Shown: positions 13,022 to 15,206, counted from the whole stretch's first letter. The stretch: 63,454 nucleotides of DNA, filler included, from Octopus bimaculoides (GCF_001194135.2; 8 parts of 7 records of this genome joined end to end with filler, not necessarily neighbours in it), one strand, 5' to 3'. The notes: generated by a model not told the origin, from the sequence alone. Numbers and translations: made by a program.

Positions 13022-13251
13022 ATAAATACATATGCATGCATCTAGACATGAAAATATATACATAAAAACGCATCCATAAAACAAACATACAAATCTGCGC
13101 ATACACTAACACCAAATACTGCACGCACACACACACATGCACAAATACCTAAATGATGTTGATAAAAGTTCCAATGAAGGAGCCTTGAATCTATGTTAGA
13201 GTGCGGCTCTTTTTCTATGGACAAGAAATGCAGAAATGAAACTGATTGTAA
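13022..13251 (+). mobile_element. RLE LINE family CATA: diverged 3' UTR
   Basis: ttccaatgaaggagccttgaatcta...ctctttttctatggacaagaaat, followed by (CATA)n at 13252-13324. Confidence 0.75.
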
Positions 13252-13324
13252 ACATACATACATACATACATACATACATACATACATACATACATACATA
13301 CACACATACACACATACATACATA

Positions 13325-14796
13325 TGGCACCTGTAACAAAACACGTATCACTAGAAAATATTACAGCCTAATAAAGAAAATTTGAACATCAGAACTCTCT
13401 GCATTCAATAAAACAGTGACCAACAATGTTTGTAGTGCCAATATTCATACCAACATTTAGGCTGCTCGATTGGACGTTTGATGAGATCTGAGCCAGTGAT
13501 GCGAAAACCCCAAAACACTAGCAAGCACATATATTTTCCGTATAAACACTGACGTAGATCACCTCTACTTAAAACGAAAACAAGGCGGTGGAAGCTTAAC
13601 ATCGATCCAAAATGTCTTTGAATGTCGTATCATATCCCTTCGGCAACATCTTTAAATCACCAAGTGTCGAAGTGCATCACTTGACCAAGTTTGCATACAT
13701 GAGGCTTATAACACCATAAGACTTGGAAGGCAGTTCTTTCAGCAACATTCCTTGTCTGATAACCTAGAATACATGCCCAAAGAAGTCGTACGACTCTACC
13801 GCAACGTTTCATCAGATGAGAGGATGAGCCTATATTAGCAGAAGACTATGCATGGATATATTAGTAGAAAGCTCCGAGACATGCACCAATAGCCGGATTA
13901 CTAACTCCCACTTTGAAGGATAAGCGTTTGCAATCCAGGAACAAGAAATATCAGATAAATATCTGATGTAAAAAAGCGATAGAGATGCAGAAAAAGTGAC
14001 AACCTATGCAGAATCTATGGAGTTCACACAGAAGATATCACCCACAACATAAGCAGTTGTCGGAAAATATCATCACAGTATTATCTACCGATGAGACATG
14101 ACGTTGTAGCTAGGACACTCTACAGGGTGTCCACAAGGTCTGGGTACATGGAGTAAATAAAATCATTACATAAACAATTAAATTTATGAAATAATAATTT
14201 TTTAAAGTATGTGTTTATCCCCATGTACCCAGACTTTGTGGACACTCTGAATAATGAAATCCGTCGGAAGGATAACCCCGAGGGCAAAGAAACAAGAACC
14301 CGCAGTATGGTAGAGGCCATAACCACTCATGATAAAAAGGAGTACTGGTAGAATGTCTCATTGAAGACCTCAGTAAAGTGTAAGCACAACAGACCTGATA
14401 TAATGATTTGGGATAGAGAAGAGAAACTGTGTACAGTTGTGGAAATTAGCTGCCCAGTGGATGTTAACATAAAGCTGAAGATCAGTGAAAAAGGGAACAC
14501 CTACGCTAAACTATTGAGAAATCTACAGTTACTCTTTCAAGATTATAAGTTCAGGTCATTATTGGGGCCCTGGGATATGTAACACACTGCCTAAATACCA
14601 ATCTTGAGAAATTAGGCTTCTCAAACCAGAAAGGAGAAAGCTAATTCGAAGACCACAGATCCAATCCATCACTGGAACTGTAAAAATCTGTAAAACTTTC
14701 CAGAAGTTTATCATTTAAATATACATGTGCATGTCTAGATATGCAAATATATGCATGAGAATACAAACATAAAACAAAGCATACAAATCTGCCCAT

Positions 14797-14827
<31 letters not shown>

Positions 14828-14955
14828 CATACATACATACATACATACAAAAATACCCTGTTACTGATGTTGAAATTCCAATGAATAAGCCTTGGATCTC
14901 GGTTAGAAACTGGTTCTTTCTCTATTGACAAGAAATCTTGAAATAAACTGAATTA

Positions 14956-14958
<3 letters not shown>
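13325..14958 (+). mobile_element. RLE LINE family CATA: longest copy (RT thumb, CCHC, RLE, 3' UTR)
   Basis: ELSAFNK, DVDHLYLKRKQGGGSL.S, QKTMHGY, AIQEQEI, CRIYGVHTEDITHNISSC, RHDVVARTLY, HNRPDIMIWD, TGTVKICKTFQKFII. Frameshifts and stops present. (CATA)n on both sides. Confidence 0.9.
14113..14249. mobile_element. Mariner-type MITE nested in the LINE
   Basis: 29-bp TIRs with 2 mismatches (cagggtgtccacaaggtctgggtacatgg). TA at 14111-14112 and AA at 14250-14251. Excising it restores ctc tat aat gaa atc (LYNEI). Confidence 0.92.
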
Positions 14959-14986
<28 letters not shown>

Positions 14987-15049
14987 CATACATACATACA
15001 TACATACATACATACATACATACGTCTGCATCTTGGTATACTTCTCACT

Positions 15050-15206
15050 GATATTCTTACCTACAAAAATACCTTGTTGTTGATCTTGAAATTCCAATGA
15101 AGGAGCTTCAGAGCTAGCTTAAAAACCAGTTCTTTCTCTATTGGCAAGAAATCTTGAAATAAAACTGAATGACATCCATCCATACATACATACATACATA
15201 CATATG
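15050..15206 (+). mobile_element. RLE LINE family CATA: distal 3' UTR fragment with tail
   Basis: aaaataccttgttgttgatcttgaaattccaatgaaggagc...gcaagaaatcttgaaataaaactgaatgac, then (CATC/CATA)n. Confidence 0.8.

Follow-up and report, generated by a model that had tools for sequence, protein, structure and literature searches.

An RLE-encoding retrotransposon family of Octopus bimaculoides with (ACAT)n tails: head-to-tail stacking and probable insertion into (ACAT)n repeats

R2 is a 28S rDNA-specific RLE element for which structures have been solved, and it serves as the model for nick-primed reverse transcription guided by an RNA element in the 3' UTR. Most RLE clades are target-specific, and among them some HERO families as well as Togen target microsatellites (PMC4640811, which cites Repbase Reports 2014 for the specificity of the HERO families). 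Dong is an RLE element that inserts into (TAA)n, with a member known from the snail Biomphalaria, and the microsatellite-specific non-LTR elements also include Waldo, on (ACAY)n, together with Mino, Kibi, and Koshi (PMC3812793). In octopus genomes, the dominant RLE class annotated is "LINE/Dong-R4" (PMC13282606, PMC8967140). For Octopus vulgaris, LINEs of the Dong-R4 and Hero groups have been annotated as active, with their targets unstated (PMC13282606; see also PMC8967140), and two HERO families are annotated in this species (PMC13282606). An earlier, sequence-only reading of the locus described here implied a higher degree of novelty than we uphold, given that microsatellite-specific RLE elements have already been described (PMC4640811, PMC3812793). 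The behavior itself is known from Dong, Togen, and some HERO families, and what is new here is a family associated with the ACAT repeat and its sister lineage associated with ACTT.

The window is a stretch of 63,454 nucleotides from O. bimaculoides (GCF_001194135.2), and our check of the observations covered the piece at 13022-20530; two of the copies listed in the sequence-only reading, at 800 and 8231, lie outside this piece. The DNA of this piece is eukaryotic and rich in repeats. Between 13022 and 15206, one non-LTR retrotransposon family is represented by three pieces (A, B, and C), all on the plus strand and with (ACAT)n tracts between them, which bears out the initial description of three pieces joined through CATA tracts. 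Copy A (13022-13251) is the last ~230 nt, that is, the 3' UTR, of an older copy whose 5' part is cut off by the edge of the piece; it shares 67-71% identity with the 3' UTR of copy B, and its terminal module folds as the family hairpin. Its tail is (ACAT)18 (13252-13324; TRF period 4, 18.2 copies, 94% matches), and the 5' end of copy B, at 13325, directly adjoins this tract. Copy B as a whole (13325-14956) is 1.6 kb long, 5'-truncated, and degenerate, and it consists of a coding remnant (13325-14718), a proximal 3' UTR (14719-14796) recognized by alignment to the 3' UTRs of copy A and of the O. vulgaris copy L002, an internal (ACAT)13 tract (14797-14849), and a terminal module of 107 nt (14850-14956) that contains a remnant of the conserved 3' UTR hairpin of the lineage. 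The tail of copy B is (ACAT)17 (14957-15023; TRF 16.8 copies, 100% matches). It is followed by a 38-nt spacer (15024-15061) for which we found no significant similarity to the family 3' UTR or to any of the loci compared, and which could be original flanking sequence, 5' filler, or a decayed tract. Copy C (15062-15171) is the terminal module only (110 nt), with 79-84% identity to the terminal modules of copy B and L002, and its tail, (CATC)2(CATA)6 (15172-15206; identified by TRF and from the sequence), forms the downstream end of the array. The claim that the copies are immediately preceded by (CATA)n was correct for copy B, which abuts (ACAT)18, but not for copy C, which begins 38 nt from the nearest tract. 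The internal ACAT tract was delimited by TRF and by the alignment of A, B, and L002, and it is a feature of the family 3' UTR, present in shorter form in L002 and decayed in copy A; copy C starts at the position where this tract ends in copy B. No copies of the terminal module other than A, B, and C were detected in the piece at 13022-20530, and an exact-pattern scan of JGI metagenome contigs with the terminal module yielded no match.

Several other features were observed downstream of the array. Two more hairpin or MITE-like elements are located at 15623-15840 and 16865-17136. In one of them, the arms of a perfect 30-nt inverted repeat are separated by 158 nt; the other is palindromic, and its 90-nt arms (81% complementary) enclose a (TG)n / poly-A core. 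Microsatellites composed of (CCAT)n and (ACAT)n together occur repeatedly, at 17994-18041 on the minus strand, at 10080-10149 of L002, and at 15172-15206. The minus-strand tract at 17994-18041, (CCAT)7(ACAT)5, has no adjoining family module, and the window sequence beside it is unrelated to the sequence upstream of the repeat in L002. An assembly gap (a run of N) with (TA)n tracts on its flanks occupies 18767-19238; long ORFs that cross this gap are artefacts, as are His- and Ser-rich ORFs that lie over microsatellites (e.g., 16458-16769).

The coding remnant of copy B can be read mostly in one frame from 13326 to a stop at 14716-14718, and its translation and tblastn searches with the related proteins P0007 and P0104 place its 5' truncation at approximately residue 716 of an ORF of ~1150 aa. 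It aligns to residues ~716-1150 of RT-RLE proteins of about that length, a part that comprises the RT thumb, the CCHC motif, and the PD-(D/E)xK region. Copy B is dead: 13 in-frame stops interrupt it, its frame shifts twice (near 14553 and 14640), ~18 aa have been deleted, and a secondary insertion that is not family sequence occupies 14121-14250. The latter is a palindromic, Tc1/mariner-like MITE of ~130 bp (inverted repeat 14116-14180 / 14192-14256; TIR CAGGGTGTCCACAAGGTCTGGGTACATGG) with TA flanks, and it is missing from the homologous site in the L001 paralogue. The remnant keeps the RT thumb and linker, the CCHC motif (14007-14102), and the RLE region, in which the core HNRPDI...VVEISCP.D.N is found at 14385-14552; alignments with relatives showed that the invariant H-N-x-P-D...K-x-C...E...P-x-D-x-N residues are retained. 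The best named protein match is LOC106878562 of O. bimaculoides, a predicted protein with 59% identity, and paralogous copies in the chromosome assemblies of O. bimaculoides and O. vulgaris are 79-82% identical at the nucleotide level. The O. bimaculoides protein P0062 is not on record as a gene. An Rfam scan returned nothing at the gathering score, with low-complexity or palindrome matches only, and no tRNAs were found.

Pfam gave no match on the stitched translation from the window itself, and the domain content of the family was read from its full-length relatives, in which RVT_1 and zf-RVT are present. No APE domain (Exo_endo_phos) was detected at E<=0.01 in six relatives of 919-1220 aa, five of which are 1142-1220 aa long. 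A PDB comparison of the RT of P0104, a full-length relative, returned R2 proteins (E 3e-28). An AF2 model of the C-terminal module of the relative P0003 (pLDDT 84) matched the R2 C-terminus best (E 2e-10, TMq 0.65), and the next matches were PD-(D/E)xK nucleases such as cap-snatching endonucleases and BspD6I. Homology to RT-RLE proteins and this predicted fold together sustain the original identification of an RLE retrotransposon, and they indicate that the family belongs to the RLE-encoding non-LTR retrotransposons (R2 / R4 / HERO / NeSL / CRE group), in which the RT is followed by a CCHC motif and, at the C-terminus, by a PD-(D/E)xK nuclease; of these parts, copy B itself contains the thumb, CCHC, and RLE only. 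The family ORF is single and ~1150 aa long, with an N-terminal three-helix domain, the RT, the CCHC motif, and the C-terminal RLE. In an alignment of P0104 with 15 relatives, the N-terminus carries a conserved basic stretch, RRNRDYS, followed by the three-helix domain with the pattern W..ELN.D.Y.CY...GYMKRMK.LWD..HPE...KQLRQQA. This domain was modeled with pLDDT above 90, and a comparison of it with the PDB gave no credible sequence match and no significant fold match. We consider it no more than a candidate DNA-binding module.

Among described elements, R2 matches the family's relatives best, in structure and in sequence, over both the RT and the CCHC-RLE module. The N-terminus of R2, however, has zinc finger(s) and a Myb domain, whereas no Pfam match to a ZnF or Myb was obtained in the N-termini of the relatives, which carry the distinct three-helix domain instead; in addition, R2 uses a fixed 28S rDNA site, whereas insertions of the octopus family lie in microsatellites. 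Membership in the R2 clade was rejected on these two grounds. Dong (R4 clade; Bombyx, Anopheles, and Biomphalaria) resembles the octopus family in having a single ORF with an RT and a C-terminal RLE, a tail repeat that is the same as the target repeat, and microsatellite sequence on both sides, a likeness of domain order and repeat behavior. The tails and flanks of the octopus family and its relatives are (ACAT)n or (ACTT)n, in contrast to the (TAA)n target of Dong and the 28S rDNA site of R4; ACAT is the repeat of the octopus family and ACTT that of the sister lineage. The microsatellite families of HERO and the fish element Togen, on (TG)n, likewise encode an RLE and are reported to insert specifically into microsatellites, but their repeat units differ from ACAT and ACTT. 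R4/Dong and HERO are the candidate clades to which the octopus family may belong. Waldo (R1 clade; mosquito and earwig) has in (ACAY)n nearly the same target motif as ACAT, which suggests convergent target choice. Waldo encodes an APE-type endonuclease, whereas the relatives of the octopus family have no APE domain and their nuclease fold is that of an RLE, and membership in Waldo was rejected for this reason.

We compared the 5' junctions of the window with those at nine other loci (L001-L005 and L008-L011); two further loci, L006 and L007, are contigs of 600-700 bp without junctions. The family's own tail-type repeat is abutted at 14 of 16 junctions, always on the same strand, or at 13 of 15 if L003 and L005, which share one composite unit, are counted once. 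The two exceptions are copy C and a fragment at L001, which lies in a zinc-finger gene array without the repeat and has lost both of its original ends, including the 3' end. For the octopus family alone, a very small sample, two of four 5' junctions abut a tract, namely those of copy B and of L002, the O. vulgaris copy, whose truncation point is near residue 1071, whose 3' tail is almost absent, and whose 5' end lies directly on (CCAT)n(ACAT)3. A related CATA-tailed family, with 60-63% amino acid identity to the octopus copies in the C-terminal region, is represented by L008 and L011. In L008, an intact ORF of 1151 aa is preceded by a 222-nt 5' UTR that starts immediately after a perfect (CATA)41. 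L011 is a stack in which a copy truncated at residue 327 is bracketed by (CATA)42 and (CATA)58, with the 3' part of another copy before the first tract and an RLE element of a different subfamily after the second; its two 5' junctions on the repeat follow (CATA)42 and (CATA)58.

The sister lineage, at ~50% amino acid identity, has (ACTT)n tails and an equivalent junction pattern with (ACTT)n. One 5' junction each is found on the tail-type repeat in L003 and L005, three in L004 (a stack of three fragments), and three in L009 (two full-length copies and one truncated copy). In L010, a full-length copy that is apparently solo is flanked by (TTAC)21 on its upstream side and by (ACTT)12 on its downstream side, and decayed TTAC-like sequence lies beyond the upstream tract. 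The full-length 5' termini of L008, L009, and L010 are homologous and each begins right at the repeat, which places the repeat outside the element. The same tail-type repeat thus flanks both ends of full-length and of 5'-truncated copies in this family and its relatives, and head-to-tail stacking is a recurrent feature of the lineage. Other repeats were observed at some of these loci. The composite unit shared by L003 (9778-10580) and L005 (9799-10581) has 90% identity between the two and begins with a SINE-like repeat, after which comes a truncated LINE 3' part of ~560 bp, identical in extent at both loci, with (TTAC)n on either side of it; its ORF fragments fall into clusters of 14 and 5 members, and the unit could be a chimera that is itself mobilized as a non-autonomous element. 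At L009, an unrelated repeat that we call elemX (3980-4386 and 9310-9708; copies 95% identical) alternates with the RLE copies and likewise has (ACTT)n at its end, and an (AACG)60 tract (9751-9989) is embedded within an (ACTT)n tract.

Across ~98 kb of the relatives' loci, all ACAT or ACTT tracts of at least 5 units are on the strand of the element, and each such tract examined adjoins an RLE copy, an RLE fragment, or another repeat of the same array. Outside element copies, ACAT tracts of at least 3 units are found only 3 times in ~92 kb-strand of octopus sequence (~1 per 30 kb-strand). With background tracts this sparse, chance is not a plausible source of the junctions: a same-strand tract would be expected to end within 2 nt of a junction with a probability of roughly 1e-4, against two of four junctions in the octopus family.

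The array in the window does not by itself show targeting, given that the tract before copy B is the tail of copy A. The argument that a tail alone cannot explain CATA at the 5' junctions was for this reason not sustained by the array, but it was sustained by L002, L008, and L011. The proposal that the family targets ACAT repeats is likewise supported mainly by the junctions of its relatives, that is, by these three loci and by the ACTT sister lineage, L010 included. Because most upstream tracts are the tails of other retroelements, a preference for tails and a preference for microsatellites are inseparable here. We assign a probability of about 0.75 to the reading that the RNA of the octopus family terminates in (ACAU)n, that the element inserts into (ACAT)n microsatellites in a single orientation, and that the array is a stack of three independent, dead insertions.

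The independence of the three insertions is indicated by the identities of their terminal modules, which are 71% between A and B, 72% between A and C, and 79% between B and C, compared to 91% between B and L002 of O. vulgaris. Given that A, B, and C are only 71-79% mutually identical, they are insertions of different age or source and not local duplicates. Microsatellites can mediate unequal exchange, and the shared orientation of A, B, and C would fit tandem duplication or unequal crossing-over between the (ACAT)n tracts of a single insertion; the pieces nevertheless have differing 5' end points, and copy B is nearer to the O. vulgaris copy than to its neighbors. On these pairwise identities we reject local tandem duplication as the origin of the array, and of the explanations considered we hold one based on duplication or unequal exchange to be the least probable, with hardly any weight left to it. 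An origin of the array in a single concatenated event is, from the divergence of the sequences, also unlikely. Such events are central to another explanation, in which the 5' repeat is made during integration: once cDNA synthesis has stopped, the RT would switch to an (ACAU)n tail, on its own template RNA or on a second one, and copy repeat units or a whole additional copy before the chromosome is joined, so that a stack and its 5' repeats would be produced in one event and at any site. The R2 reverse transcriptase is known to jump between templates in vitro, and stacks with differing truncation points are present in every locus type. This explanation is difficult to reconcile, however, with pieces that differ by 20-30% within one stack while copy B is 91% identical to a copy from another species, a pattern that points to different ages or sources. 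It also does not readily accommodate the mixing in stacks of unrelated repeat families that have the tail alone in common (the SINE-like unit in L003-L005 and elemX in L009), the decayed sequence upstream of the perfect repeat in L010, which is expected of an older, pre-existing tract, or the 164 nt of perfect (CATA)41 in L008, which far exceeds typical 5' filler. We consider it unlikely that the 5' repeats were generated in this way.

The copies could instead have accumulated passively, without any targeting, if elements with (ACAT)n tails persist in microsatellite-rich, low-recombination DNA and the adjacency is coincidental. The piece analyzed is indeed very rich in many kinds of microsatellite, and the proximity of Drosophila Waldo-A and Waldo-B to CA repeats has been explained in this manner (PMC3812793). 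Coincidence would not be expected, however, to produce exact, same-strand abutment at nearly all junctions, nor to match the tail unit of the family (ACAT or ACTT) every time while none of the many other repeats nearby is used, and the scarcity of ACAT tracts outside elements further weighs against it. Passive accumulation is accordingly very improbable in our judgment, more so than synthesis of the repeat during integration, and insertion into pre-existing (ACAT)n tracts is the reading that we prefer.

Under insertion into (ACAT)n, a mechanism can be proposed that follows the R2 model of target-primed reverse transcription. The protein would first bind the conserved 3' UTR hairpin ~45-70 nt upstream of the tail, the RLE would nick the (ATGT)n strand, and the nicked 3' end would pair with the (ACAU)n tail of the RNA and prime cDNA synthesis, with frequent 5' truncation resulting from premature termination. 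Each insertion would leave microsatellite sequence on both sides and a fresh tail, so that earlier copies would become preferred targets and stacks would build up. In the octopus family, a site of microhomology may be provided by the internal ACAT tract, and this would account for the start of copy C at the end of the tract. The hairpin is conserved at its position ~45-70 nt before the tail in L003, L004, L005, L009, L010, and L011, with compensatory changes at 8 of 10 pairs among the relatives; it is recognizable by folding in copy A (13176-13213), and the module that contains it is included in the minimal copy C. We regard the hairpin as a candidate binding element for the protein (RT).

Elements with (ACAT)n tails are found in (ACAT)n, and those of the sister lineage with (ACTT)n tails in (ACTT)n, which suggests that tail and target switch together. 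We raise, as a tentative and somewhat doubtful extension, that the choice of repeat could be set mainly by base-pairing between the RNA tail and the nicked strand and not by protein-DNA recognition, such that a one-base change of the tail (ACAT to ACTT) would re-aim the element. If pairing does set the target, these elements would be a naturally re-programmable RNA-guided insertion system, and the sister families would record a switch.

In summary, a tetranucleotide target, ACAT in the octopus family and ACTT in its sister lineage, joins the short list of those associated with microsatellite-specific RLE retrotransposons. For annotation, stacks such as the one described here are to be read as sequential insertions and not as satellite DNA. 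R2-like elements are now under development for genome engineering, and the two lineages, matched to each other and with tail and target both changed between them, offer a natural experiment on the roles of RNA pairing versus protein in R2-like target choice. Within octopus genomes, insertion of this kind may explain part of the origin of (ACAT)n tracts and their clustering on the same strand.
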